Source: Callorhinchus milii
Taxonomy: Eukaryota
NCBI RefSeq assembly: GCF_018977255.1
Contig: NW_024704807.1
Span: 124,001-188,000, forward strand
Reading direction: 5' to 3'
Length of the DNA stretch: 64,000 bases
Shown here in pieces: positions 1 to 46,641 of this stretch (position 1 is its first letter; each line of letters opens with the position of its first letter). The notes under the pieces were generated by a model. The model did no database searches, was not told the origin of the DNA, and saw only the letters and a list, made by a program, of their open reading frames with translations. The translations under genes were made by a program, and so were the position numbers.

Positions 1-596
1 GCTGGAGCTTGTAATTGTATAATTACACTGCAGATAAACATCCTCCCCTTCATTCACTGTTACAGCAGATAGGAAATGTGTCACTGCGTCTCCTGCACAA
101 TGTCCTGCAAACGAGATACAAAACAGCGTTCAGTCCAATAACAATAATAATGATGATAACGCTTACAATTTATATACAGACTGATCACATCTTTGAGGTG
201 TCCATGTGCTTCATGTAATACGCATGAAATGTATTTTCTGGGCAAAGCACTGCAGCCAATTCGCACAGAATTAACCCATAGAAGTCCAGGTTAACGTGCC
301 CATATTATCACAGGAAAAATGTTGGTAACCAAAGATTGGCGTGTGTGTGGAGTAAGGAAACTTGCCTAAGTATTTGACCTGTGCCGCCCGGGAATCGAAC
401 ACAGCTCCTCTCGCTTGTGAGACAAAAACTGAACTACAGTACTCCAGGTCCACAAATATCCGACAGCGTATTAGTTGCTTTGTGCAATAAAACTTAGGCA
501 TTGGATTTTATTTGCAAGAACCAGACTGATGAAGCGAGCTGATCGCTTACCTGACAATATAATGATGGCTGCTGCCACATAGATATACAATGTCAT
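1..596 (-). CDS. TRAV: TCR alpha/delta V segment, family B, partial (runs off window start)
   Basis: Leader 596-551 (MTLYIYVAAAIILS-G, donor GTAAGC); acceptor, then V exon from 104 (GHCAGDAVTHFLSAVTVNEGEDVYLQCNY...). Inverted paralog of the truncated gene at 43086-43845, so it may also be a pseudogene. Confidence 0.75.
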
Positions 597-1259
597 ATGT
601 ATTCAATATCACTGGAAGTTGAGAGAGCGTTGATGGTGCAGTTGGAGAATGTTGGCTGCGAGGCTGTAAGATACCTTGAATGGGGCTGAACAGGACACAA
701 CATACAGAAGCTACATACACTGTGAAGGAATAGGTCTGAAGGTTATGTACAAAAACCTTGTGTCACTGTCATTTTGGGTCATCTTCTCTGCTCTGTCATC
801 TCGCTCCTCCATGGCTTCTCTTCCATCGCTGACATTCATTTCTTCAGCTGAGGGTCTGACACCTGCAGCAAGTTACACGCATATGGAAGTTGATCCCAAA
901 CTCGTCCATGAGTTCCAAAAACGTGTGCCATCTGCGAAGTCCTGAAGCTGAATGCTTAAAGCCCTCGACACACAAGCGAGAGACCTCGGTTCGATTCCCG
1001 GCGATGTGAAATGTTGGACGTGTTACGTTAATCCCCAAACACAACTGTTTACAGATGAGTAAGTAGGAAACTTGTTGTTAGTCGAATGTTAGTTTCCTTT
1101 GTGGGGATAATAATCCCGTTTCGTATTCAAAATGCAGTCACATCACTTTACAGTATATTCTGTGAAGCGCTTTGAGACGTCTCAGAGACGAGATAAGGCG
1201 CTGTTTAAAATGCAAGTCTTATTAATATATATAGTCAAATAAAGGTAGGAGGAGGTATT

Positions 1260-1500
1260 CAGTGGAAGCCCCTGAGTGCGTTCAGACGGCTGGAAAATGG
1301 ACTACTGTGTGTTGGCTTCATATCCCCGGAGGCAGATGTCAATTTGGTAACGAGGTGAAACGAGCGATTGGAAGGTTTCAAAGCGAAAGAGGAGGAATCA
1401 AGTAACGTCAGCAGTTTCTCGGATGTCTCTGCACCAGTTAGTGGAAAGTTTCTTTCCCGCCCCTTTCCGGTCTTGGTTTCTGGGTTACAGCAGTTTGGGT
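1260..1500 (-). other. Conserved intergenic module 2 (inverted copy)
   Basis: Reverse complement of 42190-42430; related to 21030-21270 and 31220-31460. Confidence 0.6.
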
Positions 1501-2179
1501 GCAAAATACAAGTTGACTTATCCATTTCAAAGCTGCAAGTTATTGTGTTTTACGGTTTATTTCGCTGAATGATACTTCATATTTTAAAACTGTTGTTTGT
1601 AACATGTGTGTCTGACACAAGAGGCAACACATCACCATGATTTTACGTAATCAAAACAAACCGTGAAATATAACGATAAGCTTTGCTGTTGCTATCATCT
1701 TCTTGACGCCTCAAAGAGCTTTACAGCTATACTTAAAAATGTAATCACTGTGTTTTTTGTTGACGAAACTTGGCAGTCAATTGCGCACAGTTGCATTTCA
1801 AAAACAGTTGCTCAAAGAGTGTCCACATTATCTTTATTTAGTTTGAAGGAACCAGTCGATTATCAACCAGTTTCCTACTTAAAGCTGGTTAAAAATTCGT
1901 GTGTGGATTAAGAAAGTGTACTGACTTTGGATGAAACGCAGCAGTAAATTTCGCTAATAGTCGTGTGACCGATTGAGTAAACTTTTGTTTCTTTTTCATT
2001 TTTTTAAGGAATTATTACCCTACGAAAAGCGTTCTGCCAATCGACTAACAGCCGTGTTTGCCTTTGCTGCCGGGAAACGAACCCATTTGTCTCGCTTGCG
2101 GGGCGAGTGCTCTAACCATTGAGCAGCAGTAAACGCAGCACGTTTTTGTACAGGTCCCTCATAGACACACAGCACTGTG

Positions 2180-2631
2180 CTCGCTGCACAGAAGTAAGTG
2201 GCGGTGTCTGTCACTCGCAGGTTTTGGATGGTTAGAGTGCAGTTTCTCTGTCTTGTATTCGCCAAAGCTCTTATCCTTTCCTTCACACTGATGTCACTTG
2301 TTCCCAAAACCAAGAAACGGATGGAGCCGTTTCCATACTGTGTGTACCACTGAAAGGCATTCGTGGATTCAGTGGTTGTACACTCCACAGATACATTCCC
2401 ATTTTCATTCTCTGTCACGGCCTGAGGTCTCTGTGACACATTGATTTCAGCAAAGACACCTGAGAAGAAAAGTAAGTTGTTGAAAAGAAATTCGGAGAAT
2501 ATTTGCCAGGACATTTAGCAATTATTTAACAGGAATATAAGAATGAGTTTGCCCTAACTCATAACCTACTTACAAGGTAGAGATATTATTAAATTCAAAA
2601 TAATATACGTTCTGCTGTATATCTGCTTCAT
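2180..2631 (-). CDS. TRAV: TCR alpha/delta V segment, family A, intact
   Basis: Leader 2631-2574 (MKQIYSRTYIILNLIISLP); V exon 2459-2180 with C23, W41 and YFC; RSS CACAGTG 2179-2173, 23 bp, ACAAAAACG 2149-2141. Confidence 0.93.
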
Positions 2632-4141
2632 TTTCAACTCTCGTCGATTCACGTCAGAATCTTTGGTTGAAATGCCAGAGGGAATAATCTAAATGCAGAT
2701 CCTCGATTATGAACGCTTCTTCACTTGACGAGCTGTCTCTTAGCTCTGCGACGTTGTCTTGTCTCTGGAGGAGTATTGCGACACCTCCTATCGTTTAAGT
2801 TCAGATTCCCTTTCCCTCACTGTGGCAAACCAGAGTAATTTGTGAAAGAGACAGTGTAGAGAGACCTAGTTACAAAGACTCAAGGAAAGATACAAATAAT
2901 AATAATAATCCTTGTATTTGATACACCGCCTTAAAGTGTCTTGGATACGTCTCGAAATGCTTCGCGGAAAATGCAGTGAAATTAATTGGCTCTATTTATA
3001 GAGCGATGCGTGGTAGCCACGTTTGCATTGCAGAAGCACACAAACAGTCGATGATTGGGTGAACAATTCACAACATTTTGTAAGTTACTATTACCCCGGA
3101 TACCGATGCGCCATTCGTTTTCCTGCTTGCGAGGAGATAGTTCTAACCATTAAACTATAGGACCAACATGTAGTTCGGCGGAGACCCCGTATCTTGATAA
3201 TTGGTAGACTTGCAGGAATAGTGTGTGAAGAACTTTGTGATGAAGGGAATGAGATAAAGAGTTTCTCTGGGTTCCGTACAAACAGGTTTAGGATAGTATA
3301 GGTTATAAGGAATAATTTTCCAGTGAAAGTGGGAGCAGAACAGTGAGAAAATCCTGATACTCCCTATCATTGTGTTGACTGTGATCGCCTACAATTTTGT
3401 AATAAACTTGGTTTCCAATACTCTACCTTTCGAGTGTATCTGTTGTTCAGAATGGAAAGTGTAAACCAAGCAAAGGTATGCGGCTGGTAACACTCTGAAA
3501 ATGATTAGAAGTGGGGAACAGAAACATGCTTTATTGAACCATTTTTCGCAGGTTTTCAAGCCAGTGATGTCTGGTCAAAATACCAGCGAACCAGTGTCAC
3601 CCAGTGTTCAGGGAGTGAAATATATTTGTTACGGTGAACTCATAAATGTTTTCACTTGGTGCCATGCCATACCTTACCAGGCCGTTGAGACGTCTTATTT
3701 GCTTTGCAGAATATACAGTACAGTGTTGTGATTGTGAAATTTTGGGGGTGAAAAGTGATAATATATTGCCCACAAACAGTTACAGATTGAGAGAACACAT
3801 TTTTTTTCAATGAATTGATGCTACTGGAAAAGCCATCCACCAGTCGACTTACAAATCGTGTTCATATTACTGCTAGGTATACATGTGGAGCAAAGAATTT
3901 AGGCCACTGTTTAATCCCACCGGGAATCGAACCCAGGTCTTCTTGTTTGCGAGGTAAATACTCTAACCTGCAACCAATGACTACAGGACTTTCGACATGT
4001 TCCACTCTAATTTATTAGAATGATCATGTTTTAAGTGCAGCTTGCATTATAAAAGAATAAACAATACTTTTTCATGTGTCTCCAACTGCTTGACCGGTTT
4101 TCTCTATATTTAAACAGATATAAAGTCAGTTTTATGCAATG

Positions 4142-4155
4142 GCGCCCCCTGGCGG
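4142..4155 (-). promoter_or_regulatory. CTCF consensus site 3' of RSS (inverted copy)
   Basis: Reverse complement reads CCGCCAGGGGGCGC, 24 bp beyond the nonamer at 4188-4180. Confidence 0.6.
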
Positions 4156-4218
4156 TTCAGCAGCAAAACAACCAGTTGGAGTTTTTGTACGGAGTCGCCA
4201 TAGCTCGGCAGCAGTGTG

Positions 4219-4518
4219 GGCCTCTTGGCGCAGTAATACACGGCACTGTTACTGATAAGGACGGTGACAATACTCAGTTCGAAATCTTCATTAGTTTTAT
4301 TGACTTTGGAGGAAAATCGATCTGGGAAGTCAGGGCTCATACAATCCTACCTGCAATAGAGTAAAGTATGTAGACAGGAGCGTTTCTGGAAGCTTGTCTG
4401 TACCAGTAAAGATGTAGGCATCACTTATTTTCTTTAAGGTGCAGGATAATTTCACATCTTTCCCTCTTCAACTGATATTTCAGCAATCGGTTGATTCCAA
4501 TGTCTTGCAGGCTGTTTC
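4219..4518 (-). pseudogene. TRAV: TCR V segment, family E, frameshifted; leader missing (cut by gap)
   Basis: Aligns to the intact exon at 39153-39456 with four 1-nt deletions; RSS CACACTG 4218-4212, 23 bp, ACAAAAACT 4188-4180. The indels could be assembly errors. Confidence 0.8.
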
Positions 4519-4883
4519 CTGTGATTTAAAAGAAAATATTGTTGAGCAGCAAGTTTGTCTAATATGGAGACTGTAGTGTGTTGTGAGAGCATTCGCCTCA
4601 GAAGCAAAGTTATGCTGGCTTTGATATCAGGAAAGGGAAAGCTGAGGAAATTTTCCCTACTCCATACGCCTTTGTTTAAGAAGCAGTAAATAGGAACACG
4701 TTTACCAGTCGATTGGCGCCTCTCTTTTCCAGGGGTAATTAGCCCTTCAATAATGAATCAATAATGAAACAGATAATAATTTGGTCATTCAATCCATGAT
4801 TATTTGAAGAAAACTGCTGTGCACAATCGGCTCGAATAAGGATAAGCACTATATCAAATGCAATGATTATTAATATTATAATG

Positions 4884-4913
4884 NNNNNNNNNNNNNNNNN
4901 NNNNNNNNNNNNN
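4884..4913. other. Assembly gap (30 N)
   Basis: Run of N. Confidence 1.
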
Positions 4914-5246
4914 AACCAAAGGGCATAGCAGGTTGCGTGTGTTGATCGATACTTGCTCATTGCTGTCCCTATGCCAACATTGTATTTCCACAAATTGTAA
5001 TGCACCTTGTTAATCACTTTCAGCCGTTCTCTCAACGTGAAAAGCTTCAAAAGCATGAGCTTGTGTATCTGTCTACGTGTCTGTGTCTGTCTCTCAGTGT
5101 GTGTGTCTACCTTTTTGGCAGTGTCTGTGTGTGTCATTGTTTGTATGTGTGTTTGTGTTTAAGTTGTGTGTATGAGAGAGAGAGTGTCTCGATGTCTGAG
5201 TGCATCTGCGTTTACTTTTACGTTCAAACAACGTCGTTCACCTCAG

Positions 5247-5428
5247 AGGAGAACCTTAAACGCCAGACTATTGTCACTATTCTTGGCTCCGGTTTATCTA
5301 CGGGGGGATTTATCAATATACTTTATTCCACTTGCTGGTAATTTAACATGTGTAGTACTCCTGGTGTGGGGAAGGGGAACCAAACACCCTCACACACTGG
5401 AGATATGAGTCGAGGTCTTCAGGGAGGG
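5247..5428 (+). other. Candidate transmembrane/juxtamembrane exon upstream of the ITIM exon (contains an in-frame stop)
   Basis: Acceptor TTCACCTCAG; reads ENLKRQTIVTILGSGLSTGGFINILYSTCW*FNMCSTPG...LQGG. The donor GTGGGT at 5429 is in phase with exon 5498, but there is a TAA at 5339-5341 and hydrophobicity is weak. Confidence 0.25.
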
Positions 5429-5497
5429 GTGGGTGGGTGGGTGGGGGTTACTCCCAATGAACGTCTGCAGATATGTTGAGTGTTGCCCTGTTTGCAG

Positions 5498-5602
5498 AAT
5501 GCTGACATCATCTACGCCAATCTGATGTTAGGAAACAGGATTGAGAATGGCCGTGAAAACGGTGAGAATGATGGTCCAATCTACGCTACAGTCAGCGTGT
5601 AG
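5498..5602 (+). CDS. Probable terminal exon of an inhibitory immune receptor (ITIM plus ITIM-like motif)
   Basis: Acceptor CCCTGTTTGCAG; translates NADIIYANLMLGNRIENGRENGENDGPIYATVSV*. IIYANL fits (I/V/L/S)xYxx(L/V), and PIYATV lies 23 residues later just before the stop. Confidence 0.6.
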   Translation, partial: NADIIYANLMLGNRIENGRENGENDGPIYATVSV

Positions 5603-5719
5603 CACGGAGGCCGGTGGCCATCTCCTCGCTCCAGCTCCTCATCAGCAATTATATTCAATACCAGCTTCAGTTTGACGACAACGGGTCACTCACTACACTT
5701 GTCTATCTGACATAGGTGG

Positions 5720-5945
5720 AGATTGAGTTACATACTGAGATAGAATGAGTGAGTGCGTGTGAATGAGTTAGAGAGAGAGACTGAGTAAGATATAATGAGA
5801 CCGATGGTGAGAGACGGAGCGAGGGATTGCGAGAGGTAGTGAGTGAGAATGAATGTGAGAGAGAGTGATTGAATGAGACTGAATGGGAAACTGAGTGAGA
5901 GAAGGAGATAGAGTGAGACATCGGGACTGCCTGCGAGAAAGAGAA

Positions 5946-5981
<36 letters not shown>

Positions 5982-6790
5982 GAGAGAGATACTTAGTGAG
6001 AGAGTCAGTGAGAATCAGAGACTAAGAGAAAGATAACGAGAGTGAGAGCCTGTGTGGTAGAGGGTGAGAGAGTAAAAGAGAGCAAGGCAGGTTGTGAGAG
6101 AGATGGAGAGACAAAACACGAGGGGTGTGAGTGAAAATTGGAATCAGAAATGTTAGTGCTTAATTTACTGGATGGCCCAACAGTGAGCGTGTTTGAGAAA
6201 CAGTGTTTGATAGAGAGAGAATGTAAGGGGGGATCGGGAGAAAGGGGGTGAGCAGAGAAAAAGTGATGCAGAGAGAGTGTGAGAGGGACCCGAAAGATTG
6301 CGGGAGGGTAAGAGGGGGATTGAGAGCGATCAACTGCGAGCAACAGGAAAAGAATGACTGTTGAGTAGAAAGTTAATGTGCGATTCAGAAATAAGTTTGA
6401 AGTATGAGAGAAGGAGAGAACAATTGAGTTAGAGAGAGTGTCACAGAGAGAGAGAAACAGGGGTGACACGGAAGGAGAGAGACGGGGTTAGGAGAGAGAG
6501 ATTCAGAGGTTGAAGGTGAGCGATCGATTGAGAGACCGATTATGATGGAGAGCGGCAGAGAGAGGGACAGAGCAGGGGAAACAAACAAGGAGGAACAGAG
6601 CATAGAGAGTGAGAGATGGCAGAGAGAGTGTGTGTGGGGTAGGTGGTGGGGGGTTGGGGCGATGCACGTGGGAAGCGAGGTATTGAGAGACAGGAACGGA
6701 AATAGGGAGAAATAAGGGAAAAGAGTATGAAAGGACAAAGAGTGAGAGAGAGGGGGGAAATGTGTGAAGGTACAGAGAGAGAGTGAACAT
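5720..6790. repeat. Purine-rich (GA)n/(GT)n low-complexity tract
   Basis: Near-continuous GAGA/GTGA degenerate microsatellite. Confidence 0.85.
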
Positions 6791-7269
6791 CTGCAGCTCT
6801 GTTACTTGCTCATGTAACTGTCTGTGTTGTTTAACCATAATCATCTGATGGGAACCGAAACGCGAGCGTTTCCTGTATTAACGCAAGTGTATTGACCCGA
6901 TCAACTCATTGCAATTAAATATAATATCCCATATTCAGCATTAATTTGATTCGATGAAATGTATCAGTTACATTATGCGTCAGCTTAGCAATCTTTTATT
7001 AAATTTTACTACTGAAAAAGAAATGTGTATCAACTCGTACTTCAGCGCAAGGTCACGAAATAAATAATTCTTGCACTTTACGTAAACCAGACTGAAAACA
7101 GCTATCAGAGTAAGAATGCGTCGCCACCATGGTTTTATTTATGAACTGGTCATTATGATGTTAGTGCTGGTCACTATGACAGGGAGGAGGTGTGTGTGGT
7201 TGAGGTGGGAGAGGGGCTGGGTGTGTTGACAGGGTAAGGGCTATGTGTGAATGAGAAGGGAAGGGGCTG

Positions 7270-7580
7270 GGTCTGGGCGAGAATGGGGTGAGGCTTGGTG
7301 TGGGTGAGGATTTGGCGTCGCTGGTGCAAGTGAGGTTGGGGTGGAGCTGGGTGTGAGTGAAGATGAGGTGGAGCTGGTTGTGAGTGAAGATGCGGTGGTG
7401 CTGGGTATGAGTAAAGATGGGGTGGAGATGGATGTGGGAGAGGATGTGGTGGAACTGGGTGTGGGTGAAGATTGGGTGGGATTGGGTTTGGGGGAGGATG
7501 GGGTGGAGCTGGGTGTGAGTGACGGTGGAGTATAGCTGGGTGTAGGTGAGGATGGAGAGGGGCTGTTGTGGGTGAGGATG
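7270..7580. repeat. Degenerate ~27-nt tandem repeat (S/T/P-rich on the minus strand)
   Basis: Unit similar to GGGGTGGAGCTGGGTGTGAGTGAAGAT; 9-aa periodicity in translations on both strands. Confidence 0.75.
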
Positions 7581-9049
7581 GGGTGTGGAAAGAAGGTGAG
7601 TATTGGCAACAAAATTATACAACAACAAATTACAGTTTTGTAGCGCTCTCCACGAAGCAAACGCTTCCCAATTGAACCCCTGAACGGCCACATATTTGCA
7701 GCTTCCTGGTTCCCCAAATCTGACAATAATTACGCACTGAATGGCGCGAATTTAAAATGCCCCCAAGTCCAGTCAGATAAGAATGGCTGTAAGGCCTACA
7801 GTTACAGGCACATGCCCAGCGGGTAGTGGTGTTGCACTGTAACTCCTCCCTGTGTTCACCGTACAACATCGCCGCCCAGAGGCTGACATCGGTATTACAG
7901 CTCCACGGAAATCCACTTAATAATTTCTTACTTTTTCAACAAAACAGCAAATAATCTGCATGTAGTTAGACTCCTTCACATAGTATAACGAATCGGAGCT
8001 GTTCTTCGGTAATTTACTGTACCTCAAAAATACATTCTCATTCCATTTTCAGCTTTATGTCAATAAATTGTTACCCACTGAATCCAATTTCACAAAATTT
8101 ATTGTTCATTCTCTCGGTCCGGTGATCACCATCTAATGCTGGAGAGCGGAAAGGCAGTATAAACAATTCATCGAGTCCTCCTTTCTCTCGATGATTGTTG
8201 TGCATCAGATGTTATATTCTTTCACTGACTAACTGTGTTCCAATTTAAAATAAAAACCTGAAACACCACACTACTGCCACTAGATTTTCGCGTTGCACTG
8301 TTTAACTTCCTGTAATGATCTGACTAAAACTACACGTCTTCCTTCAGTCTCACTGTCTCACTGGAGTTGATCTGGAGTTTATTGACGAATGTCAAAATGG
8401 AGACAGCACTGTGTGAGTGTCTCCCAACTGATTCCTTACCAGGCGTTTTCGCAATACTCCGGGACACTGCTCGGGGTAGAGCATCAGACTGCCTCATCGA
8501 CAGAATTTGGAAGGGCACACCAGTCACCAGGGACAGGGAATGCGACCTCGCAGTTTCTGATAATCAACGCCCTAATGTGCAGTGTGGTCGTAGGAATGGG
8601 AAATGCTCATTCTCCAATCATTAAACGACTAGGAGCACACGTACAACTCACCCCAAGGAACTCACCAGCCTTCACGCACACACATGTTCAACCCCGTGGT
8701 GTGCATGTGCAGATCCAAAGGTGTGCATGTGTGCACTTACATCTTTCTCCACGCAAGCGGGCAAGCATAAACACGCTTTGGTTTGCACAGCAAATGGATC
8801 AAAAAAGAGACACTCACAATAATATTTGTTACGACATCAGGGTTGATGTGTCATTGAGTATTATGATGGCTCTATTCAATAACGAAAATAATAGTACTCA
8901 ATGATTTTGATACATTGGCTTATCCCATATTTCTCACGTATTAAACAGCTTCATAGAATATATCGGAGAATGAAATAATTGTTTATTTTGTTGTCGAAAT
9001 ATTGTTTGGAAGACTGTCTTTTCCCCTTTATTCATGCAACTACCTGGTT

Positions 9050-9400
9050 AATTTTCAATCCAATATGTTACTTATGCGCCTTTCACTTCGAGAGGACGTC
9101 CCAAGGCGCTGAAGTGTCAGGATGGCGATTGGGATGGCGTCCGCGGGGATTGGAGAGGTTGGAGGGCAAAGGATGTGATGAGGGTGAACGGCCGCAAAGT
9201 CAAAGAGGAGGATCTTGAGATGGGTCTTGAAGGAGGCAAAAGAGGGGATGAGACGGAGTGACTGCACCCAGAGAGCGGGGAAAGCGTGGCTGATGGCCCG
9301 CCCGCCAATGGTGGGACAGACTAGCCATGGAACGTGAAGCAGCAGAGATCTCTAAGTGGAGGAAGCCAGGAGGTTGCGAGGGAGTTAAGAGTTCTCTGAG
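9050..9400 (-). mobile_element. L2-type LINE 3' fragment
   Basis: Reverse-complement 3' tail (GCGCC...GGACGTCCCAAGGCGCT) followed by L2-like ORF2-end/3'UTR sequence; family not verified by a database search. Confidence 0.55.
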
Positions 9401-9819
9401 TTAAGGAGAATAATAATATATTTATATTATATTAACGTTATTATAACAATAATATTATCAGGTGGTGAGAAGTACGTAATGCAAATGCTACTTAAAAATT
9501 TCATTCATAAACATAATCCTTGCATTTGTTACGCCACCTTTTCTCAAACGCTTCGCACAATATACTGGAAAGTGAATTGCCTGGGTGTTTTGCGGTGAAA
9601 GGTGGCACTCGATTGCGCACAGCAGTGTCCCGCGAATAATTGTGAATTGAGTAGAATTATCATTGTTAATCTTAAGGTATTATTACACCCAGAAAGCGAT
9701 CCCCCAGATTCCACGACTCCTCTCAATATTGGCGGTGGACCCTCCAGCGGTTCCCGCTGCAATCTTCAAATCAATCAGCGAGAAGTCCTGTTAGTTCGCA
9801 GTTGGAGAGTGTAACAGTG

Positions 9820-10026
9820 AGAGAGACGAAGAGATAGAGCGTGTGTGTGAGAGAGACAGACTAAGAGAGAGACAGACTGAGAGAGAGAGAGAATGAGATA
9901 CAGTGAGAAAGAGGGAGGTATAGAGGGAATGTGGGTGTGAGAGATAGAGACAGAGAGAATGAGTGAGAGAGACTGTGTCTAGGAGAGAGAGTGACTGACA
10001 GAGAGGGAGACTGATTTAGAGTGACT

Positions 10027-10057
<31 letters not shown>

Positions 10058-10110
10058 TGAGATAGAGAGAGAGGAAGAGAGAGAGGGAAAGAGATAGGTG
10101 CATCATAGGG
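9820..10110. repeat. (GA)n-rich microsatellite tract
   Basis: GAGA runs visible directly. Confidence 0.85.
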
Positions 10111-10401
10111 GAGAGGAACTTTGCTCACTATCCAAGCAGAGAGAAAGGTATGTCTGTTCATTTCATACACCCAATCGGTTCTGATTACATAGCATTAAAT
10201 GGGAATACTGGTGTTAGTCGATTTGTGAATTAAATTTAGCACAAGCAAACATACAGGAAACGAGCAGTTCGTGAAGGCGTCACCGAGAGTATAATTATAA
10301 CTGCACCATTAGCGGCGCTCCACAAACGTTACCAATTTTTATCAGAATTCAGCTGATTTCTGGCTGCATTTCAACCAGAAATTTTGACGTGAGAGTTGAG
10401 A

Positions 10402-10899
10402 ATGAAGCAGAATTTCAATGCAAAGTATAATTATTTGGCATATAATGATATCACTGTTATGTAAGTAGGCGATGAGTCTCTCTCTCTCTCTCTCTCTCTC
10501 TTCATCACTGTCTCAGTCTCCAACAAAATACGTAGTCACTGCAATTAATAACATATTCTCTCTCAGTCATTCTCTCGCTCAGTCTCTCATTTTTCTTATG
10601 CTAATGATTATCACCTCAGGTGTTTGTGTTGAGAGCGATATATCACAGAGTCCACAGGACGTGACAGAGAATGAAAACGGGAAAGTGTCTACGGAGTGCA
10701 CCACCACGGGGAACCTTCCTGTCTTTCACTGGTACACATGGTATGGAAACGGCTCCGTCCGGTTCTTGGTTTCGGGGAAGAAAGCGACATCAATGTGTCG
10801 GACCGGATAAGTGCTTTGGCCGAGCGAACAGAAACACAGCACACAGACAGTCAAAGCCTTGCGAGTGACAGACACCGGCACTTACTTCTGTGCGGACAC
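10402..10899 (+). pseudogene. TRAV: TCR V segment, family A, frameshifted
   Basis: Leader 10402-10460 is 59 nt (58 in paralogs); V exon 10620-10899 shifts frame after FR2; intact RSS CACAGTG 10900-10906, 23 bp, ACAAAAACA 10930-10938. Confidence 0.85.
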
Positions 10900-11121: not shown

Positions 11122-11442
11122 ATAATAATAATAATAATCCTTGCGTTTGATATATCGCTTTTCACATCGGGAGGACGTCCGAAAGCGCTTCACAGAACAC
11201 ACTGTAAAGTGAATTGACTTTATATTTGTAGGCGAACGCGGCAGCCAATTGCGCACAGCAATGTCCCACAAACAGTCGTAGATTGAAAATGACCAACTTG
11301 TTATTGTTTAGGGTTTTGGAGGGATTAATATTAGGTGCGTGGAGTTAGGAAACTTGCCCAAGGTTTCGCCTGGTCTGGAATTGAACTCAGGTCTCTCGCT
11401 TGCAAAGCGAGTGCTCTAACCACTGAGCGACAGGACTCCACA
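11122..11442 (-). mobile_element. tRNA(Ala)-like SINE with L2-like tail, near full length
   Basis: Minus strand begins TGTGGAGTCCTGTCGCTCAGTGGTTAGAGCACTCGC (A box) ...GAGTTCAATTCC (B box) and ends GCGATATATCAAACGCAAGG(ATT)n. Dozens of degraded copies occur across the window. Confidence 0.8.
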
Positions 11443-16420: not shown

Positions 16421-16745
16421 AATAATAATAATAATAATCCTTGCATTTGATATAGCGCTTTTCACGTCAGGAGGACGTCCCAAAGCGCTTCACAGAACAC
16501 ACTTGAAAGTGAATTGACTGTATACTTGTGGGCGAACGCGGCAGCCAATTGCGCACAGTAATGTCCCACAAACAGTCGTAGATTGAAAATGACCAATTTT
16601 TTTGTTTTTGGTTTTGGAGGGATTATTATTAGGCTCTGTGTGGAGTAACGAAACTTGCCCAAGGTTTCGCCCTCTGCCTGGAATTGAACTCAGGTCTCTC
16701 ACTTGCAAAGTGAGTGCTCTAACCACTGAGCTACAGGACTCCAAA
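16421..16745 (-). mobile_element. tRNA-derived SINE, near full length
   Basis: Closely similar to 11122-11442 from head to (ATT)n tail. Confidence 0.8.
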
Positions 16746-25710: not shown

Positions 25711-26859
25711 ATTTGCCTAAAGTATTCACACAAGGCTTAGGTTGATGAAGAAACAATTTCTATGCCGCATGCTGAATATTATTGCCTTCATCCCAAATAG
25801 CAGCCGCTAATAAATAGTTTTATCTTCGGCAAAACAATTCGCTCTTGAAAGTTGTAACCGTAACGGCTTCAGTCGCCCTTTCAGGCAACGCGTTCAAGAT
25901 CGGAATAACTTGCTGTGTGAAAAAANTATACGTCTCCACTCCTCAATGTTTGGTCAGGTAACTACATTAAACGTGAGCATTAAGCTACTTAATAGGTATA
26001 TAACTGTATAATAAAAACATTGATATTTCATCCCGCAACTGACATATTGAAATGCGACTGAAAAGATCACTGTGTAATATGTATTGGATTATTTTATTCT
26101 GTTCTGGGCTGACACTCTAGAGCAGACCTGGCTGTCTTTATTGTCGGTGAAGCTCGTCCTACCGAGTTAATATTAAACCCAGGTCCAGGCGGCTTGTTTG
26201 AAGGGACTATGAAAATGCCATTGCACTGCTCGAGAAATAACCAGGTTTCTACCGCTGTCTGGGCAGACTTGCATCTATAAAATTCATCCTTCATTCATAG
26301 CTGTTTGCGGGACAGTGTTGTGCACAAATCGGGTGCCAAGTTGATAAACACGCTGTCTCTGTACTCGACATTAAAACCAGCAAGGAGTTTTGTGGCGTAT
26401 TGACAAAATGACAAGGCTGTATATGATAAAAGCATTTCTCAAACACGGTTAATGAACACAAATGTAAGGGTATGTCTTATTCAACACTGTGATAATAACG
26501 ATAATAATAACAAAGATTGCATTTGATATACTGCCATATTATGTCATTGAGATGTCTGAAACCTCTTCACAGAATACCCTGGAAAGTTGAGTGACAATAT
26601 TGTATGATGCCAATTGTGTACAGCAGTGTCCCACAAAATGTTGTGGTTTGAGTTGCCTTACTTTGCGGCACTGTGGGAGATTGTGGGGTGTGGGGTGGAG
26701 GGGCGGAGGGGTTGGATGGGTCGTTAGATTGTAATGGGGGGAAGGACAAACTTGGTAGCCAACTGTATAAAACAGTGGCCCATACATTGTTGTGGATTGA
26801 GTGACTTGATTGTGTGGCACTGTGTGTGTTTGTGTGGGGGGAGTGGAGGAGGCGGGGCG

Positions 26860-27260
26860 CTGTGTGGGCGGGGCGCTGCGATGTAACGGCAGTGATTGGG
26901 TGATGCGTCTCAGTGCGGTCGGGGCAGCGACTGAGTGACGTAGCTCTGTGGACGTGGCAGAGGCTATGTGGGCGGGGCTCTGTGTGGGCGGGGCGCTGTC
27001 CATTAGCGGCATTGATTCGGCGATGCGGCTCAGTGCAGGCAGGGCAGTGACTGAGTGACCTACCTTTGTGGGCGTGGCAGTGGCTGTGTGGGCGGGGCTC
27101 AGTGCGGGCGGGGCAGTGGCTGATTAACGTAGCACTGTGGGCGTGGCAGTTGCTGTGTGGGCGTGGATCTGTGTGGGCGGGGCAGTGACTGAGTGACGTG
27201 GCTCTGTGGGCGTGACAGTGGCTGTGTGGGCGGGGCTCTGTGTGGGCGGGGCTGTAACTG
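26860..27260 (+). repeat. GC-box/CRE-like minisatellite at a family E promoter
   Basis: About 8 GGGCGG motifs in TGTGGGCGGGGC units interleaved with CTGAGTGACG(T); ends ~70 bp before the ATG at 27333. Confidence 0.8.
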
Positions 27261-30382: not shown

Positions 30383-31219
30383 CACAGTGCTGTGTGTCTA
30401 AGAGGTACCTGTACAAAAACATGTTGGTTTTACTGCAACTCAACGGTTAGAGCACTCGCTTCGCAAACGAAATAATTGGGTTCAATACCGGGCAGTGCCA
30501 AATGTTGGCCAAGTTTCGTTACTCCACATGCGTCTGTCTATCCAGCAGTAAGTCGGAATATGGTTGTTAGTTGATTGACCGATCGTTTTTCCGATGGTGA
30601 TAATTCCTATAAAGAGAGAAAAAATTTCAATGCACAACTGTGTGTGGGACACTGCTACGCGCAAACGGCTGCGACATTTCGCCGTTAACATAAACAGTCA
30701 ACTTACTTCACCGTACAACCTACCAAATGCTATGTGTCATCGAATAGGTGATGAAGCGCTGTATTAAATGCAAAGATCCTTATTATTTTTAATGGTTTAC
30801 TGAGGCGGAACGAGGAACCCGATTCACAGCAGTTTGGATGATCTCTTTTTTCGGGTGTAATAATCCATCAACAAAATGGATCACTCGATCAAAGACTGTT
30901 TGAGAGACGCTGCACTATGCACTTGGCTGCCGGGTGTTGTCCACAAAATACACTGTCGATGCACTTTACACGGTACCCTCGGAGGACCGTACAGTCGACT
31001 CGGACAAGTGGTAAATCGTTATGTTAATTACTTTTATTATAACCCAAAGGTTGGTTTAGATAATCATATGCATGGAAATGGTTTCCACATATGTCAGACA
31101 CCAGTTTAACAAAAATACATGATTATGTATGTAGGATCATTCCGCGAAATAAATCGTAAAACACAGTAACTTGAAGAAATGAGTTATCGTAGAAAACTTG
31201 TACTTTGTACCCAAACTGC

Positions 31220-31460
31220 TGAAACCCAGATGCATAGAGCGGAAAGTGACGGAAGGGAAACTTTCAAATAATTGGGGCAGAGACATCTGAGAAACTGCTG
31301 ACTTCACGTGGCTCCTCGCCTTTCGCTTTGAACCCTCTCAATGGCTCGTTTCACCTCGTTATCAAATTGACAGCTGCCCCCGGGGATGTGATGGCAGCAC
31401 ACATTAGACTTGTGTCTCTAGCCGTCTGCACACACTCAAGGCTTCCACTGAATACACCGT
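31220..31460 (+). other. Conserved intergenic module 2
   Basis: Homologous to 21030-21270; retains CACGTG. Confidence 0.55.
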
Positions 31461-37240: not shown

Positions 37241-38387
37241 TACAAATGTTGTCTAAAGTATTAACACAAGGCTTAGGTTTCTCAGGAAATAATTTCTATC
37301 TCACATATTTTATATTGTGCCCTTTTCACAAATAGCAGCCGCTGTTAAGTTGTATTCTCCACTGTATTGCAATTCTCTCTTGAAAGTTGTTATATTATCG
37401 GCTTCTGCCACCCTTTCAGGCAATGCATTATAGATCAGAACCACTCGCTGTGTGAAAAAAATGCTTCTCCTCTCCTCAATGCTTATTCAGGCTACTACAC
37501 TAAACGTGAATATTAAGCTATTTAATACGTTTATTACCATATAATTAAAATATACTTTGATATTTCATCCCGCAACTGAAACATTGAAAAGCCACCGAAG
37601 TGCTCACTGTGTAATACATATTGGATTATGTTCTGATGTTCTGGGCTGACACTCTAGGGCAGGCCTGGCTGTCTGTATTGTCGGTGAAGCTTGTCCTACC
37701 GAGGAGATACTAAACCGAGGTCCAGACATCTTGCCTGATGGGACTATAATGATGCCATAGCACTGCTCGAGAAAGGACAAGGTTTCTACCGATGTCTGGA
37801 CAGATTTTCTATCGGTAAAATTCGTCTTTCATTCATAACTGTTTGTGGAACATTGTTGTACACAAATTGGAGGCCACGTTGACAAACAATCTGCCTCTGT
37901 ATTCGACATTAAAACCTGCGAGGAGGTTTGAGGCGAATCTACGAAATGACAAGACTGTGATCGATGAAAGCGTTTCTCAAACACGAATAATCAACACAAT
38001 TGTAAGGTCATGTATTATTCAATATTGTAACAATATCGATAATAATAACAAAGGTTGCATTTGCTATACTGCCATATTAAGTCATTGAGACGTCTCAAAG
38101 ATCGTCACAGAATATACCGAAAAGTGGAGTACTATATTCTTTTATGCCAATTGTGTACAGCTGTGTACCACAAAAAGTTGTGGGTTGAGTTGCCTTATTT
38201 TATGGCACTGTGTGTGTGGCAGTGTGTGGGGGGTGAGGTAGAGCGGGGGATTGGGTAGTCATGGGCGTTAGATTGTATTGTGTGGGACAAACGTGGTAGC
38301 TAACTGTGTAAAAGATCGGCCCACAAAAATTTGTGGATTGAGTGACCTGATTTTGTGGCACTGTGTGTGTTTGTGTGGGGGAGGGGA

Positions 38388-38610
38388 GGGGGCGGGGCGC
38401 TGTGTGGGCGGGGCGTTGTAATGCAACGGCAGTGATTGGGCGATGCGGCTCAGTGCGGGCGGAGCAGAGTCTGAGTGACGTATTTCTGTGGGCGTGGCAG
38501 TGGCTGTGTGGGCGTGGCTCTGTGAGGGCGGGACAGTGACTGAGTGACGTAGCTCTGTGGGCGTGACAGTGGCTGTGTGGGCGGGGCTCTGTGTGGGCGG
38601 GGCTGTGACT
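38388..38610 (+). repeat. GC-box/CRE-like minisatellite at a family E promoter (shorter copy)
   Basis: Same units as 26860-27260, with fewer copies. Confidence 0.8.
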
Positions 38611-38684
38611 GTGTGGCTACTGAGCCCAAAAGCCCCATCAATCCACATTGGGGAGTTAATGTCAGACACGGGATCAGGATGCTC

Positions 38685-39456
38685 ATGTGGGAGACATGTG
38701 CTGTGCTCTCAATCACTCTCAGCTTACTTTGCCGTTAGTATCTTTTGTATATCTTCTTTTGTTAACATCTTGTTATACCTTTCTCAACAATATAACATTA
38801 ATAATCCTTTGATTAGATGTTGCGCCTTTCCATATATTCGAGACGATTGTCAGCAGCTCTTTTGATCAAATAGTCTCATCGATTGAGTGTCCAAATTATT
38901 ATCTATTTTATTATTGATATATCATTGAAGGGCTAATTACCGCTGGTAAAGAGAGATGCCAATCGAGTAGCAAACTTGTTTCTATTTACTGCTTGGTAAA
39001 CAGGGGCGTATGGAGCAAGTAAAGTTGCCTAAGCTTTCGCTCTGCCCTGCTATAAAAGCCAGATCCACTTGCTTGTGAGGCGATTGCTCTCAACACTACA
39101 CTGCAGGAATCCACAGAAGACAATCTCAACACTATTTTCTTTTAAATCCCAGGAAACAGCCTGCAAGACATTGGGAATCAAACGATTGCTGAAATATCAG
39201 TTGAAGAGGGAAAGGATGTGAAATTATCCTGCACCTTAAAGAAAATCAGTGATGCCAACTATCTTTACTGGTACCGACAAGCTTCCAGAAACACTCCTGT
39301 CTACATACTTTACTCTATTGCAGGGAAGGATTATATGAGCCCTGACTTCCCAGATCGATTTTCCTCCAAAGTCAATAAAACTAATGAAGATTTCGAACTG
39401 AGTATTGTCACCGTCCTGATCAGGGACAGTGCCGTGTATTACTGCGGCAAAGAGCC
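38685..39456 (+). CDS. TRAV: TCR alpha/delta V segment, family E, intact
   Basis: Leader 38685-38733 (alternative ATG at 38679); V exon 39153-39456 ending YYCGKEP; RSS CACACTG 39457-39463, 23 bp, ACAAAAACT 39487-39495. Confidence 0.92.
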
Positions 39457-39519
39457 CACACTGCTGCCGAGCTATGGCGACTCCGTACAAAAACTCCAAC
39501 TGGTTGTTTTGCTGCTGAA

Positions 39520-39533
39520 CCGCCAGGGGGCGC
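39520..39533 (+). promoter_or_regulatory. CTCF consensus site 3' of RSS
   Basis: CCGCCAGGGGGCGC, 24 bp after the nonamer. Confidence 0.6.
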
Positions 39534-41053
39534 CATTGCATAAAACTGACTTTATATCTGTTTAAATACAGAGAAAACCGGTCAAGCCTTTGGAGACGCA
39601 TGAAAAAGTATTGTTTATTCTTTTATAATGCAAGCTGCACTTAAAACATGATCATTCTAATAAATTAGAGTGGAACATGTCGAAAGTCCTGTAGTCATTG
39701 GTTGCAGGTTAGAGTATTTACCTCGCAAGCAAGAGGACCTGGGTTCGATTCTCGGATGGGATTAAACAGTGGCCTAAATTCTTTGCTCCACATGCACGCC
39801 TCTGTATACCTAGCAGTAATATGAACACGATTTGTAAGTCGACTGGTGGATGGCTTTTCAAGCAGCATCAATCCATTGAAAATAAAATATGTTCTCTCAA
39901 TCTGTAACTGTTTGTGGGCAATATATTATCACTTTTCACCCCCAAAATTTCACAATCACAACACTGTACTGTATATTCTGCAAAGCAAATAAGACGTCTC
40001 AACGGCATTGTTAATAAATGGCATGGTACCAAGTGAAAACATTTATGGGTTCACAGTAACAAATATATTTCGCTGTCTGAACACTGGGTGACACTGGTTC
40101 GCTGGTATTTTGACCAGACACCACTGGCTTGAAAGCGTGCGAAAAATGGTCCAATAAAGCATGTTTCTGTTCCCCACTTCTAATCATTTTCAGAGTGTTA
40201 CCAGCCGCATACCTTTGCTTGGTTTACACTTTCCATTCTGAACAACAGATACACTCGAAACGTAGAGTATTGGAAACAAAGTTTATTACAAAATTGTAGG
40301 CGATCACAGTCGACACAATGATAGGGAGTATCAGGATTCTCTCACTGTTCTGCTCCCACGTTCACTGGAAAATTATTACTTATATCCTATACTATCCTAA
40401 ACCTGTTTGTACGGAACCCAGAGAAACTCTTTATCTCATTCCCTTCATCACAAAGTTCTTCACACACTATTCCTGCAAGTCTACCAATTATCAAGATACG
40501 GGGTCTCCGCCGAACTACATGTTGGTCCTATAGTTTAATGGTTAGAACTATCTCCTCGCAAGCAGGAAAACGAATGGCGCATCGGTATCCGGGGTAATAG
40601 TAACTTACAAAATGTTGTGAATTGTTCACCCAATCATCGACTGTTTGTGTGCTTCTGCAATGCAAACGTGGCTACCACGCATCGTTCTATAAATAGAGCC
40701 AATTAATTTCACTGCATTTTCCGCGAAGCATCTCGAGACGTATCCAAGACACTTTAAGGCGGTGCATCAAATACAAGGATTATTATTATTATTTGTATCT
40801 TTCCTTGAGTCTTTGTAACTAGGTCTCTCTACACTGTCTCTTTCACAAATTACTCTGGTTTGCCACAGTGAGGGAAAGGGAATCTGAACTTAAACGATAG
40901 GAGGTGTCGCAATACTCCTCCAGAGACAAGACAACGTCGCGGCGCTAAGAGACAACTCGTCAAGTGAAGAAGCGTTCAAAAGCGAGGAGCTGCATTTGGA
41001 TTATTCCCTCTGGCATTTCGATCAAAGATTTTGATGTGAATCGAGAGTTGAGA

Positions 41054-41508
41054 ATGAAGCAGATATTCAGCACAACGTATATTATTTTGAATTTAATAAT
41101 ATCTCTACTGTGTAAGTAGGTTATGAGTTCGGGCAAACTCACTCTTGTTTTCCAGTTAAATAATTGGCAATTGTCCTGGCAAATATTCTACGAATTTCTT
41201 TTCAACAACTTATATTTCTATTTCTCAGGTGTCTTTGCTGAAAGTGCTGTCTCACAGAGACCTCAGACTGTGACAGAGAATGAAAATGGGAATTTATCTG
41301 TCGAGTGCACCAACACTGAATCCACCACTGCCTTTCATTGGTACAAACAGTTTGGAAACGGCTCCATCCGGCTCTTCGTTTTGGGAACAAAAGACATCAA
41401 TGTGAAGGACAGGATAAGAGCTTTGGCGAATACAAGACAGAGAAACTGCACTCTAACAATCCAAAACCTGCGAGTGACAGACACCGCCACTTACTTCTGT
41501 GCAGCGAG
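41054..41508 (+). CDS. TRAV: TCR alpha/delta V segment, family A, intact
   Basis: Leader 41054-41111; V exon 41229-41508; RSS CACAGTG 41509-41515, 23 bp, ACAAAAACG 41539-41547. Confidence 0.93.
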
Positions 41509-42189
41509 CACAGTGCTGTGTGTCTATGAGGGACCTGTACAAAAACGTGCTGCGTTTACTGCAGCTCAATGGTTAGAGCACTCGCCTCGCAAGAGAGATA
41601 AATGGGTTCGTTTCCCGGCAGCAAAGGCAAACACGGCTGTTAGTCGATTGGCAGAACACTTTTCGTAGGGTAATAATTCCTTAAAAAAATGAAAAAGTGA
41701 CAAAAGTTTACTCAATCGATCAACCGACTATTAGCGAAATTTACGGCTGCGTTTCATCCAAAGTCAGTACACTTTTCTTAATCACAGACGAATTTTTAAC
41801 CAGCTGTAAGTAGGAAACTGGTTAATAATCGACTGGTTCCTTCAAACTAAATAAAGATAATGTGGGCACTCTTTGAGCAACTGTTTTTGAAATGCAACTG
41901 TGCGCAATTGACTGCCAAGTTTCGTCAACAAAAAACACAGTGATTAAATTTTTAAGTGTACATTTAAAGCTCTTTGAGGCGTCAAGAGGATGATAGCAAC
42001 AGCAAAGCTTATCGTTATATTTCAGTTTGTTTGAATACGTAATATCATGGTGATGTGTTGCCTCTTGTGTCAGACACACATGTTACAAACATCAGTTTAA
42101 AATATAAAGCATCATTCAGCGAAATAAACCGTAAAACACTATAACTTGTAGCTATGAAATAGATAAGTCAACTTGTGTTTTGCACCCAA

Positions 42190-42430
42190 ACTGCTGTAAC
42201 CCAGAAACCTAGACCGGAAAGGGGCGGGAAAGAAACTTTCCACTAACTGGTGCAGAGACATCCGAGAAACTGCTGACGTTACTTGATTCCTCATCTTTCG
42301 CTTTGAAACCTTCCAATCGCTCGTTTCACCTCGTTACCAAATTGACATCTGCCTCAGGGGATACGAAGCCAACGCGCAGTGGTCGATCGTCCAGCCGTCT
42401 GAACACACTCAGGCGCTTCCACTGAATACC
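42190..42430 (+). other. Conserved intergenic module 2
   Basis: Homologous to 21030-21270 and 31220-31460. Confidence 0.55.
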
Positions 42431-43085
42431 TCCTCCTACCTTTATTTGACTATATTTATTAATAATACTTGCATTTTAAACAGCGCCTTATCTCGTCTCT
42501 GAGACGTCTCAAAGCGCTTCACAGAATATACTGTAAAGTGATGTGACTGCATTTTGAATACGAAACGGGATTATTACCCCCACAAACGAAACTAACATTC
42601 GACCAACAACAAGTTTCCTACTTACTCATCTGTAAACAGTTGTGTTTGGGGATTAATGCAACACGGCCAACATTTCCCATCGCTGGGAATCGAAACGAGG
42701 TCTCTCGCTTGTGTGTCGAGGGCTTTAAGCATTCAGCTTCAGGACTTCGCAGGTGGCACATGTTTTTGGAACTCATGGACGAGTTTGGGATCAACTTCCA
42801 TATGGGTGTAACTTGCTGCAGGTGTCAGACCCTCAGCTGAAGAAATGAATGTTAGCGATGGAAGATAAGCCATGGAGGAGCGAGATGGCAGAGCAGAGAA
42901 GATGTCCCAAAATGACAGTGGCACAAGGTTTGTACGTAACTCTCATACCTACTCCTTCACAGTGTATGTAACTTCTGTACGTTGTGTCCTGTTCAGCCCC
43001 ATTCAAGGTATCTTACAGCCTCGCAGCCAACATTCTCCAACTGCACCATCAACGCTCTCTCAACTTCCAGTGATATTGAATACAT

Positions 43086-43845
43086 ATGACATTGTATATC
43101 TATGTGGCAGCAGCCATCATTATATTGTCAGGTAAGCGATCAGCTCGCTTCATCAGTCTGGTTCTTGCAAATAAAATCCAATGCCTACGTTTTATTGCAC
43201 AAAGCAACTAATACGCTGTCGGATATTTGTGGACCTGGAGTACTGTAGTTCAGTTTTTGTCTCACAAGCGAGAGGAGCTGTGTTCGATTCCCGGGCGGCA
43301 CAGGTCAAATACTTAGGCAAGTTTCCTTACTCCACACACACGCCAATCTTTGACTACCAACATGCAGGATTTCGGATAAAGGCCGATAGGCAGATGACTT
43401 TTATGGTGGTGACAATCCTGAAAAAAATTTATAACCCGTGATAATATGGGTACCTTAAGCAGGACATTTATGGGTTAATTCTGTGCGAATTGGCTGCAGT
43501 GCTTTGCCCAGAAAATACATTTCATGCGTATTACATGAAGCACATGGACACCTGAAAGTTGTGATCAGTCTGTATATAAATTGTAAGCGTTATCATGATT
43601 ATTATTGTTATTGGACTCAACGCTGTTTTGTGTCTCGTTTGCAGAACATTGTGCAGGAGACGCAGTGACACATTTCCTATCTGCTCTAACAGTGAATGAA
43701 GGGGAGGATCTTTATCTGCAGTGTAATTATGCAGTTACATGCTCCAGCAATCCCGGTGTGTGCTGGTACCCTCGCTATCCCATCAAAGCTCCAGAGTGTA
43801 CCCTGAGCACATCCATCAACAACAAGATCAATAAACATGCAGACT
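43086..43845 (+). pseudogene. TRAV: Family B V segment, 3'-truncated, no RSS
   Basis: Leader 43086-43131; V exon from 43645 reads to ...NKINKHAD, then joins sequence that normally follows the nonamer; FR3, C104 and the RSS are absent. Confidence 0.85.
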
Positions 43846-45603: not shown

Positions 45604-46641
45604 ATGGGGATGGAGAGAACTGTTGTGTTTCTGGCTCTTGGTGCCTTCTTATTAGGTAAATCTTTCCATCAAATTTTAAAATCATTTAACTGAGTCTGTT
45701 TCACTTTCCTTCTCATATTAGTAATCACAATTATATTATATTTATATTTGTAATGGCGTTTTATGTAGCGTTTCAACATGTTTTCGAGAAGTCTAACGGC
45801 GTTTCGCAGAATATACTGTAAAGTGCAGTGACTGTGTATTTCTTGGGGGAGAATCGGTAGCCAATTCCACAAAGTAGTGCTCCCCAAATAACCAAAAGTG
45901 TTTTGCTCTATTTTTCAAAGGATAGTCATCCCTGTAAAGCGATCGGTTGATTGAATAACAAAGAGTTTTCTATTTCGTGTTGTGTAACTAGAGGTGTGCG
46001 CGTTAGGGAAAGTTCCCTATAATTGTGCACTATCCTGTCCAGGAATCGAACCCTTGCCGTTTCTCTTGCGAGGCGAGCGCTCTAACCACTGAGCTACAGT
46101 ACTCCACGTCCTTTTATTTTCTTTTTGAACGGAATATTATTCCCGGATAGGGATCAGCTAATTGTGTAACCAACAGATTTCTACTTAGCGTTGGGTAACA
46201 AGAGGAGTGTGCGTTAAGGAAACTTGCTTAAGATTGTGCCCTGTCCTCTCCGAAAATCGAACCCGGGTCGTATCTCTTACGAGGCGACCGCTCTAACCAC
46301 TGAGCTACAGGAATCCACGCTCTTGTCTTTCAGGCCTGACCCAGGGAGACTCTGTGACACAGAAGGTGGCTTCGTTGATTAGGAAAGAAGGAGGAAGTGT
46401 GACCATGGAATGCCATTATGATACGTCTCTGAGCAGCTACTATTTAAGCTGGTATCGAGAACAACAAGAAACACAACCACAGTATGTGCTCCAAAAGCAT
46501 TCCAGTGGTAGTACATATAAAGCAGACTTTGCTAACAAGTGGTTCGCTGTTGAGCTCTAAACCTCGACAAAATTCACCAGTTTAACCATCTCCCTGTTGG
46601 AGCTGTCTGACAGCACTGTATATTACTGTGCTCTCCAAACA
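45604..46641 (+). pseudogene. TRAV: TCR V segment, family F, single in-frame stop
   Basis: Leader 45604-45655; V exon 46334-46641 with TAA at 46558-46560, then the frame continues to YYCALQT; RSS CACAGTG 46642-46648, 23 bp, ACAAAAACT 46672-46680. Confidence 0.88.

Follow-up and report, generated by a model that had tools for sequence, protein, structure and literature searches.

The tails of mammalian LILRB and PIR-B receptors hold several ITIMs and end in an xIYAT[LV] motif (SIYATL at the terminus of the LILRB1 tail), and these receptors have short-tailed relatives with an arginine-containing (NxxR) transmembrane (TM) segment. Teleost LITR and chicken CHIR form species-restricted multigene families comprising inhibitory and activating forms together with fragments and pseudogenes. 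Siglec, CD300 and NITR proteins, for which a V-set domain at the N-terminus is the defining feature, belong to the type I receptors of the Ig superfamily and have tails combining an ITIM with an ITIM-like motif. Group B SRCR proteins include CD163, WC1 and SCART; of these, WC1 serves gamma-delta T cells as a co-receptor and has tyrosines in its tail. FCRLS carries Ig domains of the FcR-like type and a C-terminal SRCR domain. Mouse FCRLS is a soluble protein lacking an ITIM tail that unites domains of the Ig-like and the type B SRCR kind (PMC4016189). Shark genomes, that of the elephant shark included, were reported to have no homologues of LRC or FcRL (Akula et al. 2014, PMC4016189). An antigen-receptor complex around TCR alpha/delta was described in cartilaginous fish (Flajnik et al. 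2025, PMC12227049), in a text from which the terms ITIM, SRCR and LRC are absent.

We analysed a stretch of 64,000 nucleotides of the Callorhinchus milii genome (contig NW_024704807.1, positions 124,001 to 188,000 of the forward strand), hereafter the window, which contains an array of V genes and one short exon encoding a tail with two tyrosine motifs. Judging from homology, window positions 4985-6986 very probably represent the 3' end (i.e. end of the last intron, last coding exon and 3' UTR) of a paralogue of a C. milii receptor family. This family is like LILRB/PIR-B in its Ig domains (matches to PirB, LILRB2, LILRB1, NKp46 and OSCAR), in its several ITIMs, in its terminal xIYAT[LV] motif and in having short-tailed NxxR relatives. 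It is unlike them in that many members bear an N-terminal SRCR domain and that the last motif has Pro, and not Ser, Ile, Val or Leu, at position -2; the tails have only motifs in common, and the likeness described here is one of domains and motifs. The multigene organization with both signalling forms, fragments and pseudogenes recalls, by description, that of LITR and CHIR, which however lack SRCR heads and are unreported inside a TCR V array. In a PDB search, the SRCR part of XP_042201732.1 matched CD163 with E 2.5e-193, whereas neither CD163 nor WC1 contains Ig domains, and the window tail bears no relation to theirs; the window itself contains no SRCR exon. Given a location within a TCR alpha/delta-type V array, the parallel with WC1 may nevertheless be regarded as suggestive. 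The Ig-SRCR combination is also that of mouse FCRLS, and the presence of an ITIM tail distinguishes the C. milii family from it (PMC4016189). Siglec, CD300 and NITR share the ITIM plus ITIM-like tail layout with the family of the window tail, but the C. milii paralogues show C2-type Ig and SRCR domains above the Pfam cut-off in place of the V-set domain defining these receptors.

The tail exon lies on the forward strand at positions 5498-5602 (34 codons plus TAG) and encodes NADIIYANLMLGNRIENGRENGENDGPIYATVSV, starting right after an acceptor at 5497/5498. The polypyrimidine tract and AG of this phase-0 acceptor (ttgccctgtttgcag, 5483-5497, forward strand) are directly followed by AAT. For comparison, three paralogous loci were fetched from assembly GCA_018977255.1, namely L001 on scaffold MU249862.1 and L002 and L003 on scaffold MU249905.1. 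The acceptor tract shows no difference from L002 and one substitution relative to L003, and the junction falls at the same position in all three loci as well as in the annotated gene models P0006, P0002 and P0004. The clean acceptor of the two-tyrosine tail exon proposed by the sequence-only reading is hence placed as at the last exon of annotated paralogues; a family HMM alignment also begins precisely at 5498, the first codon past the predicted acceptor. The exon is confirmed as genuine and correctly delimited. It is located in an island in which, as proposed, no V gene occurs (4914-10470).

Read directly from the sequence, the exon contains a canonical ITIM ([ILVS]xYxx[ILV]), IIYANL, at 5507-5524 and an ITIM-like C-terminal motif, PIYATV, at 5576-5593, both on the forward strand. 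The latter has Pro at -2, which makes it neither a canonical ITIM nor an ITSM (TxYxx[VI]). The two tail tyrosines are separated by 23 residues, a spacing equal to that of PECAM-1. The paralogues, in which IIYANL comes after the TM helix, would place this motif in the cytoplasmic part of the protein. IIYANL had also been taken for a membrane-proximal ITIM, which does not hold for the family: full-length paralogue tails have three tyrosine motifs, VTYATV, IIYANL and P[IV]YATV, with VTYATV first and split over two small upstream exons, and the window exon encodes the second and third.

Both motifs of the window exon are retained in long-tailed family members, a few of which have degenerate versions. 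In the seven listed models whose tail is canonical, the first of these motifs reads IIYANL or IIYANF, and in P0022 it reads VIYANL; it is degenerate in P0018 (TYTNL), P0021 (TFADL) and P0017 (ITNANL). That of PIYATV is P[IV]YATV, AVYATV or PVYAN[TI] in paralogues, PVYATN in P0017 and a canonical SVYSSV in P0022. The sole amino-acid change specific to the window, and the one that distinguishes its copy, is an Arg-to-Ser replacement of the penultimate residue: the window has AGC (Ser) at 5594-5596 on the forward strand, a position occupied by Arg in all seven listed models that end canonically in ...YATVRV, with AGA as the codon in the three paralogous exons read as DNA.

The layout of the motifs by itself is not above chance and cannot support the claim of a receptor tail. 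When the six frames were scanned for an ITIM followed, at 12-35 residues, by Yxx[ILV] and by a stop within 8 residues, 7 two-tyrosine tails were counted in the window, against 5.0±2.3 expected from 200 second-order Markov simulations. Such numbers, together with the TG- and GA-rich low-complexity DNA flanking the exon, are what a chance ORF with two YxxL/V motifs, or part of an interspersed repeat, would lead one to expect. As layout alone proves nothing, the question was settled by homology. A phmmer search of the 34-residue peptide against 1.84 billion representative proteins gave three real matches, all of them C-termini of C. milii gene models: XP_042201735.1 (450 aa; LOC103172721), identical at 33 of 34 residues with an E-value of 3.4e-12, XP_007910466.1 (654 aa; 73% to the tail peptide) and XP_042201132.1 (206 aa; 67%). 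In XP_042201732.1 (616 aa), a neighbour of XP_042201735.1, 32 of the 34 tail residues are identical. A 5007-aa bacterial repeat protein (P0001) heading the phmmer list has no aligned stretch and was discarded as a composition or repeat artefact.

By tblastn, the tail exon matched five family members at 62-97%, the three other than the closest two being at 62-71%. An HMM of the family TM plus tail, run against the six-frame translation of the window, matched only the tail ORF (1.3e-15). The exon conforms to the pattern common to the family, [DN]A[DE]IIYAN[LF] ... G[PA][IV]YATVRV, apart from its penultimate residue, and its DNA is identical to that of the paralogues at 100 of 105 (L002) and 101 of 105 (L003) bases. 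No second copy of the tail segment was found within the 64-kb window. Elsewhere in the genome, where a search for paralogous tails had been proposed, the exon occurs once at each of the three fetched loci, always as the last exon of a family gene. The low-complexity flanks argue in the same direction: the TG-rich intron and the GA-rich 3' region align co-linearly with the paralogues and are therefore features of the family rather than random simple sequence. Against this evidence, we consider a chance or repeat origin of the exon to be practically negligible.

The family to which the exon belongs consists of proteins with CD163-like SRCR and/or LILR/PIR-B-type Ig domains, one TM helix and a cytoplasmic tail with three tyrosine motifs. 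Its models, including those of LOC103172721, LOC103191288 and LOC121851362, bear automatic names such as IGSF1-like, A1BG-like, OSCAR-like, DMBT1-like and M130-like. A search for full-length homologues returned 22 clusters, all composed of C. milii models or metagenomic-catalogue entries, with no other species named; the conservation of the tail motifs described here is accordingly one among C. milii paralogues. Pfam assigned SRCR, Ig_2, Ig_3, ig and Ig_C19orf38 (C2-type Ig) to P0006, P0009 and P0019. No V-set domain was above the cut-off in these three proteins, V-set_CD47 being sub-threshold with no stretch passing alone. In the PDB, the Ig part of P0009 matched PirB (1.3e-8), LILRB2 (1.2e-7), LILRB1, NKp46 and OSCAR, and no Fc receptor was among its matches. 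Pfam gave no match for the tail peptide or for the largest ORF of the island (8389-8901).

Short-tailed relatives carry an NxxR motif, i.e. NTMR before and within the TM segment in P0019/20 and NVAR in P0026/27. This TM motif is a hallmark of activating receptors of the LRC (PMC6557307). Based on the PirB/LILRB matches, the SRCR domains and the coexistence of long tails with short-tailed NxxR forms, the family looks like a lineage-specific expansion of LRC-type paired receptors, often SRCR-headed. The proposal of an inhibitory-type Ig-superfamily receptor gene or pseudogene thus agrees with the 33/34 match to a receptor C-terminus and with the canonical ITIM. Among the receptor types that had been listed as models, PIR/LILR is the one borne out by the PDB matches (PirB, LILRB), whereas Siglec, CD300 and NITR are disfavoured by the lack of a V-set domain above the Pfam cut-off. 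As for the suggestion that the receptor is undescribed, we found no published description of the C. milii SRCR/LRC-type-Ig family in the open-access literature, but about 20 automatic RefSeq/Ensembl gene models of it exist; the window exon belongs to a family that is already modelled and apparently unpublished.

Two further layouts were observed among the models. P0023 is butyrophilin-like in its layout, with an N-terminally truncated SRCR domain and two LRC-type Ig domains joined to a domain of the PRY/SPRY (B30.2) type. The models P0010 and P0014 terminate in ...NVTCE at a stop codon, which corresponds to read-through of the donor of the first small cytoplasmic exon and to an isoform without any tail tyrosine.

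Homology to the family extends well beyond the exon. Window positions 4985-6677 align to L002 28232-29910 with 88.6% identity over 1706 aligned columns, with abrupt limits at both ends, and, for about 1 kb, positions 4985-5981 align to L003 with 86% identity; a weaker homology to L001, likewise co-linear, extends to 6986. Upstream of the exon, the 3' part of the last intron (4985-5497, forward strand) is 84.8% identical to L002 28232-28729 and aligns to L003 28466-28968. It includes the TG-rich stretch (about 5062-5170), has stops in all frames in the window and is intronic in the annotated paralogues. Downstream, the GA-rich, family-specific 3' flank (5603-6986, forward strand) is presumably the 3' UTR, given its co-linear homology; its 5603-6677 part differs from L002 28835-29910 by 8.1% substitutions. 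The homology to L002 stops at 6677, whereas the window retains beyond this point an older flank common to L001. The first predicted poly(A)-signal-like hexamers past the stop codon are ATTAAA at 6914 and 6998 and AATAAA at 7059 (span 6914-7064, forward strand).

The genes for XP_042201735.1 and XP_042201732.1 on the unplaced scaffold MU249905.1 use the same acceptor as the window and are 86-89% identical to it in the last intron and the 3' flank. They differ from the window copy in having Arg, not Ser, as penultimate residue and in being complete, with exons for SRCR, Ig and TM parts plus three cytoplasmic ones, where the window has the last exon alone assembled. At L001-L003 the 3' end of the paralogues starts from a TM exon, which is followed by a small exon with ...NVT at its end (phase 1), by one of 43 nt that encodes (Y)ATVRKVPRSVPPM and ends in phase 0, and by the tail exon, which begins with AATGCTGAC after an intron-terminal cag, a junction equal to that of the window.

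This gene structure bears on the segment 5247-5428, which had been put forward as a candidate TM exon splicing in phase to the tail exon and carrying one stop. These features are present as described from the letters. If used, the segment would be spliced to the tail over a 69-nt intron and would form a minimal TM-plus-ITIM pseudogene, an arrangement with which the compatible phases, the presence of GT and AG and a moderately hydrophobic stretch in frame are consistent. In the annotated paralogues, however, the segment is intronic and the TM exon lies further upstream, separated from the tail exon by about 4.2 kb and two small exons. The alignment of 5247-5428 to the last intron of L002 and L003 (87-92% identity) shows the same conservation as the surrounding intron; stops occur in all three frames in the window, in L002 and in L003, and L002 has a frameshifting 1-nt indel. 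No similarity to the family TM exon was found by tblastn or HMM. We conclude from these alignments that 5247-5428 is part of the intron and not a TM exon, and consider a two-exon pseudogene to be highly improbable.

No other exon of the family (SRCR, Ig, TM or either of the two small cytoplasmic exons) was detected in the six frames of the 64 kb, using tblastn (E<=5) and HMMs of the Ig and TM/cytoplasmic parts. An assembly gap of 30 N at 4884-4913 lies 584 nt upstream of the tail exon. In the paralogues, the preceding exon is about 980 nt (L002) or about 1740 nt (L001) from the tail exon, distances exceeding these 584 nt, so that the expected upstream exon falls behind the gap. The 30-N run is a placeholder length, found also in L001 and L002 of GCA_018977255.1. 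The sequence-only reading had placed the ectodomain exons in or beyond the gap, in agreement with their expected position and with the absence of any of them from the assembled window.

We lean slightly towards a receptor gene, functional now or recently, that continues into the gap at 4884-4913. The upstream exons (SRCR, Ig, TM and the two small cytoplasmic exons) would then lie inside this unsequenced gap, and the gene would be intact or have been so until recently. The other reading is that of an orphan relic, in which a partial duplication or rearrangement brought only the terminal exon, with the last 0.5 kb of intron before it and the 3' UTR after it, into the V array, leaving an unexpressed or non-functional fragment; we give it a substantial, though less than even, chance. 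Homology to both closest paralogues breaks abruptly at 4985, 71 nt from the gap, and the 71 nt at 4914-4984, searched for a deletion or rearrangement partner, had no match in any fetched locus, which counts on the side of a relic. Just upstream of the equivalent point, however, L001 and L002 have 50 nt and 533 nt, respectively, before homology between them resumes. Since these two loci themselves diverge near the same point, the break at 4985 is uninformative; it may correspond to an indel-prone part of the intron.

The missing exons and the setting also speak for a relic: no further family exon occurs in the 64 kb, and as assembled the sequence left of the gap is an inverted V block and not receptor sequence, so that V genes stand on either side of the island. 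The length of the gap is, on the other hand, a placeholder. Gene fragments are frequent in this receptor family, whose fragments and pseudo-exons exist elsewhere, e.g. an Ig exon with an in-frame stop at L001 6931-7221. The Arg-to-Ser change, unique at a position conserved among the models with a canonical tail, likewise counts for a relic, and no annotated protein with exactly the window tail was found among proteins of 248-787 aa.

The substitutions within the exon point the other way. ORF and acceptor are intact in the window copy despite a neutral divergence of 10-14% in the flanks. The exon differs from L003 at 4 of 105 bases (3 synonymous, 1 nonsynonymous) and from L002 at 5 of 105 (3 synonymous, 2 nonsynonymous), giving a pS of 13.6%, comparable with the flanks, and a pN of 1.3-2.5% (pN/pS 0.09-0.18). 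Summed over both lineages of each comparison, the deficit of nonsynonymous changes relative to the flank rate has Poisson P values of 0.0002 and 0.015. On the window branch alone, 1 nonsynonymous change stands against about 4-5.6 expected under neutrality, for an estimated P of about 0.02-0.09. These values suggest purifying selection on the exon over both lineages combined, are suggestive for the window branch taken alone, and mildly favour a gene that works or recently worked. Gene conversion as the cause of the exon similarity was rejected because synonymous divergence equals flank divergence.

Linkage of the tail exon to V genes is real, both here and on MU249905.1. In the window, the exon and the V genes found from 10.5 kb onward lie on a single gap-free stretch (4914-25925). 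A second case is provided by L002, where a V pseudogene on the reverse strand (30874-31237; stop in ...DAAT(stop)YC), whose DNA is 83% identical to the window V gene at 57583-57951, is located 2 kb downstream of the stop codon of the gene for XP_042201732.1 and ahead of the next SRCR gene, in gap-free sequence; about 2.7 kb around it are co-linear with window 55945-58475. The neighbours at the fetched loci are only GBP, SRCR and V genes. While the claimed linkage to TCR-type V genes is thereby upheld, its placement at the array edge is not exact: in the assembly, V genes flank the exon on both sides, since window 1-4883 repeats 38788-43748 in inverted orientation (93.8% identity, two V genes included). 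Either a genuine palindromic duplication or a contig placed in the wrong orientation could account for this copy. The left contig breaks off at the gap, at the point where the forward copy runs into a repetitive low-complexity region (38268-38865).

Assignment of the V array to the TCR alpha/delta type is supported indirectly. The best matches of the window V genes are C. milii V-set proteins, all named "Ig-like domain-containing protein", and no TCR identity was obtained from these database names. When the V genes were compared with single-V PDB chains, the best matches included human Vdelta1 and TRA. In addition, an 82-aa ORF on the forward strand (61766-62011) aligns, from residue 1 to about 70-78, to shark VNAR/IgNAR variable domains (PDB, E about 1e-7); it looks like a V segment of the NAR-TCR type, which would fit a TCR delta context.

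Considered alone, the window exon is one more paralogous tail of a family already modelled by RefSeq, and as such ordinary. The family and its location have wider implications, as they confront the survey reporting no such receptors (PMC4016189) with a chimaera possessing an expanded LILR/PIR-type Ig paired-receptor family, often a SRCR-Ig mosaic, whose members adjoin TCR-type V segments in two independent cases, each on sequence free of gaps. By analogy with LILRB, PIR-B, PECAM-1 and SIRP-alpha, ligand engagement might draw the receptor close to an activating receptor, and Src-family kinases would phosphorylate the tail tyrosines on co-ligation. The motif pair, with its 23-residue spacing, could then dock the tandem SH2 domains of SHP-1 or SHP-2, which would dephosphorylate proximal signalling proteins and damp activating signals. 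Phosphatase recruitment by the IIYANL/PIYATV tail is inferred here from these analogies; the short-tailed relatives with an NxxR TM segment may act as the activating partners, paired with an ITAM adaptor.

A working cluster of non-rearranging inhibitory and activating LILR-type receptors, often headed by CD163/WC1-like SRCR domains and physically intermingled with TCR alpha/delta V segments in a holocephalan, is a tentative proposal that we regard as rather unlikely as a whole. If it were true, LRC-type paired receptors would date back to the base of jawed vertebrates, contrary to the earlier survey (PMC4016189), and would belong to the region that, as the "antigen receptor complex", now figures in discussions of how rearranging receptors arose (PMC12227049). 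They might also serve as T-cell co-receptors in the manner of WC1. If the genes are expressed, they would provide a candidate inhibitory co-receptor of chondrichthyan lymphocytes and a testable example of an ancient linkage that joins innate receptors of the ITIM/ITAM type to rearranging antigen-receptor genes.

Repeats were also encountered within the V array. ARAGORN called tRNA-Ala/tRNA-Thr genes at 2062-2133, 11367-11436, 16669-16739 and 46242-46315, all on the reverse strand. A dispersed repeat of 100-250 nt, located near many V segments and present also in L001-L003, overlaps at least three of these four calls and is most likely a SINE derived from a tRNA. Upstream of one V subfamily, two similar proline/threonine-rich low-complexity ORFs (...PPTQSPAH...ATPTE[LI]RHS...) were observed on the reverse strand at 26539-27012 and 38268-38669, probably reflecting a tandem repeat that troubles the assembly.
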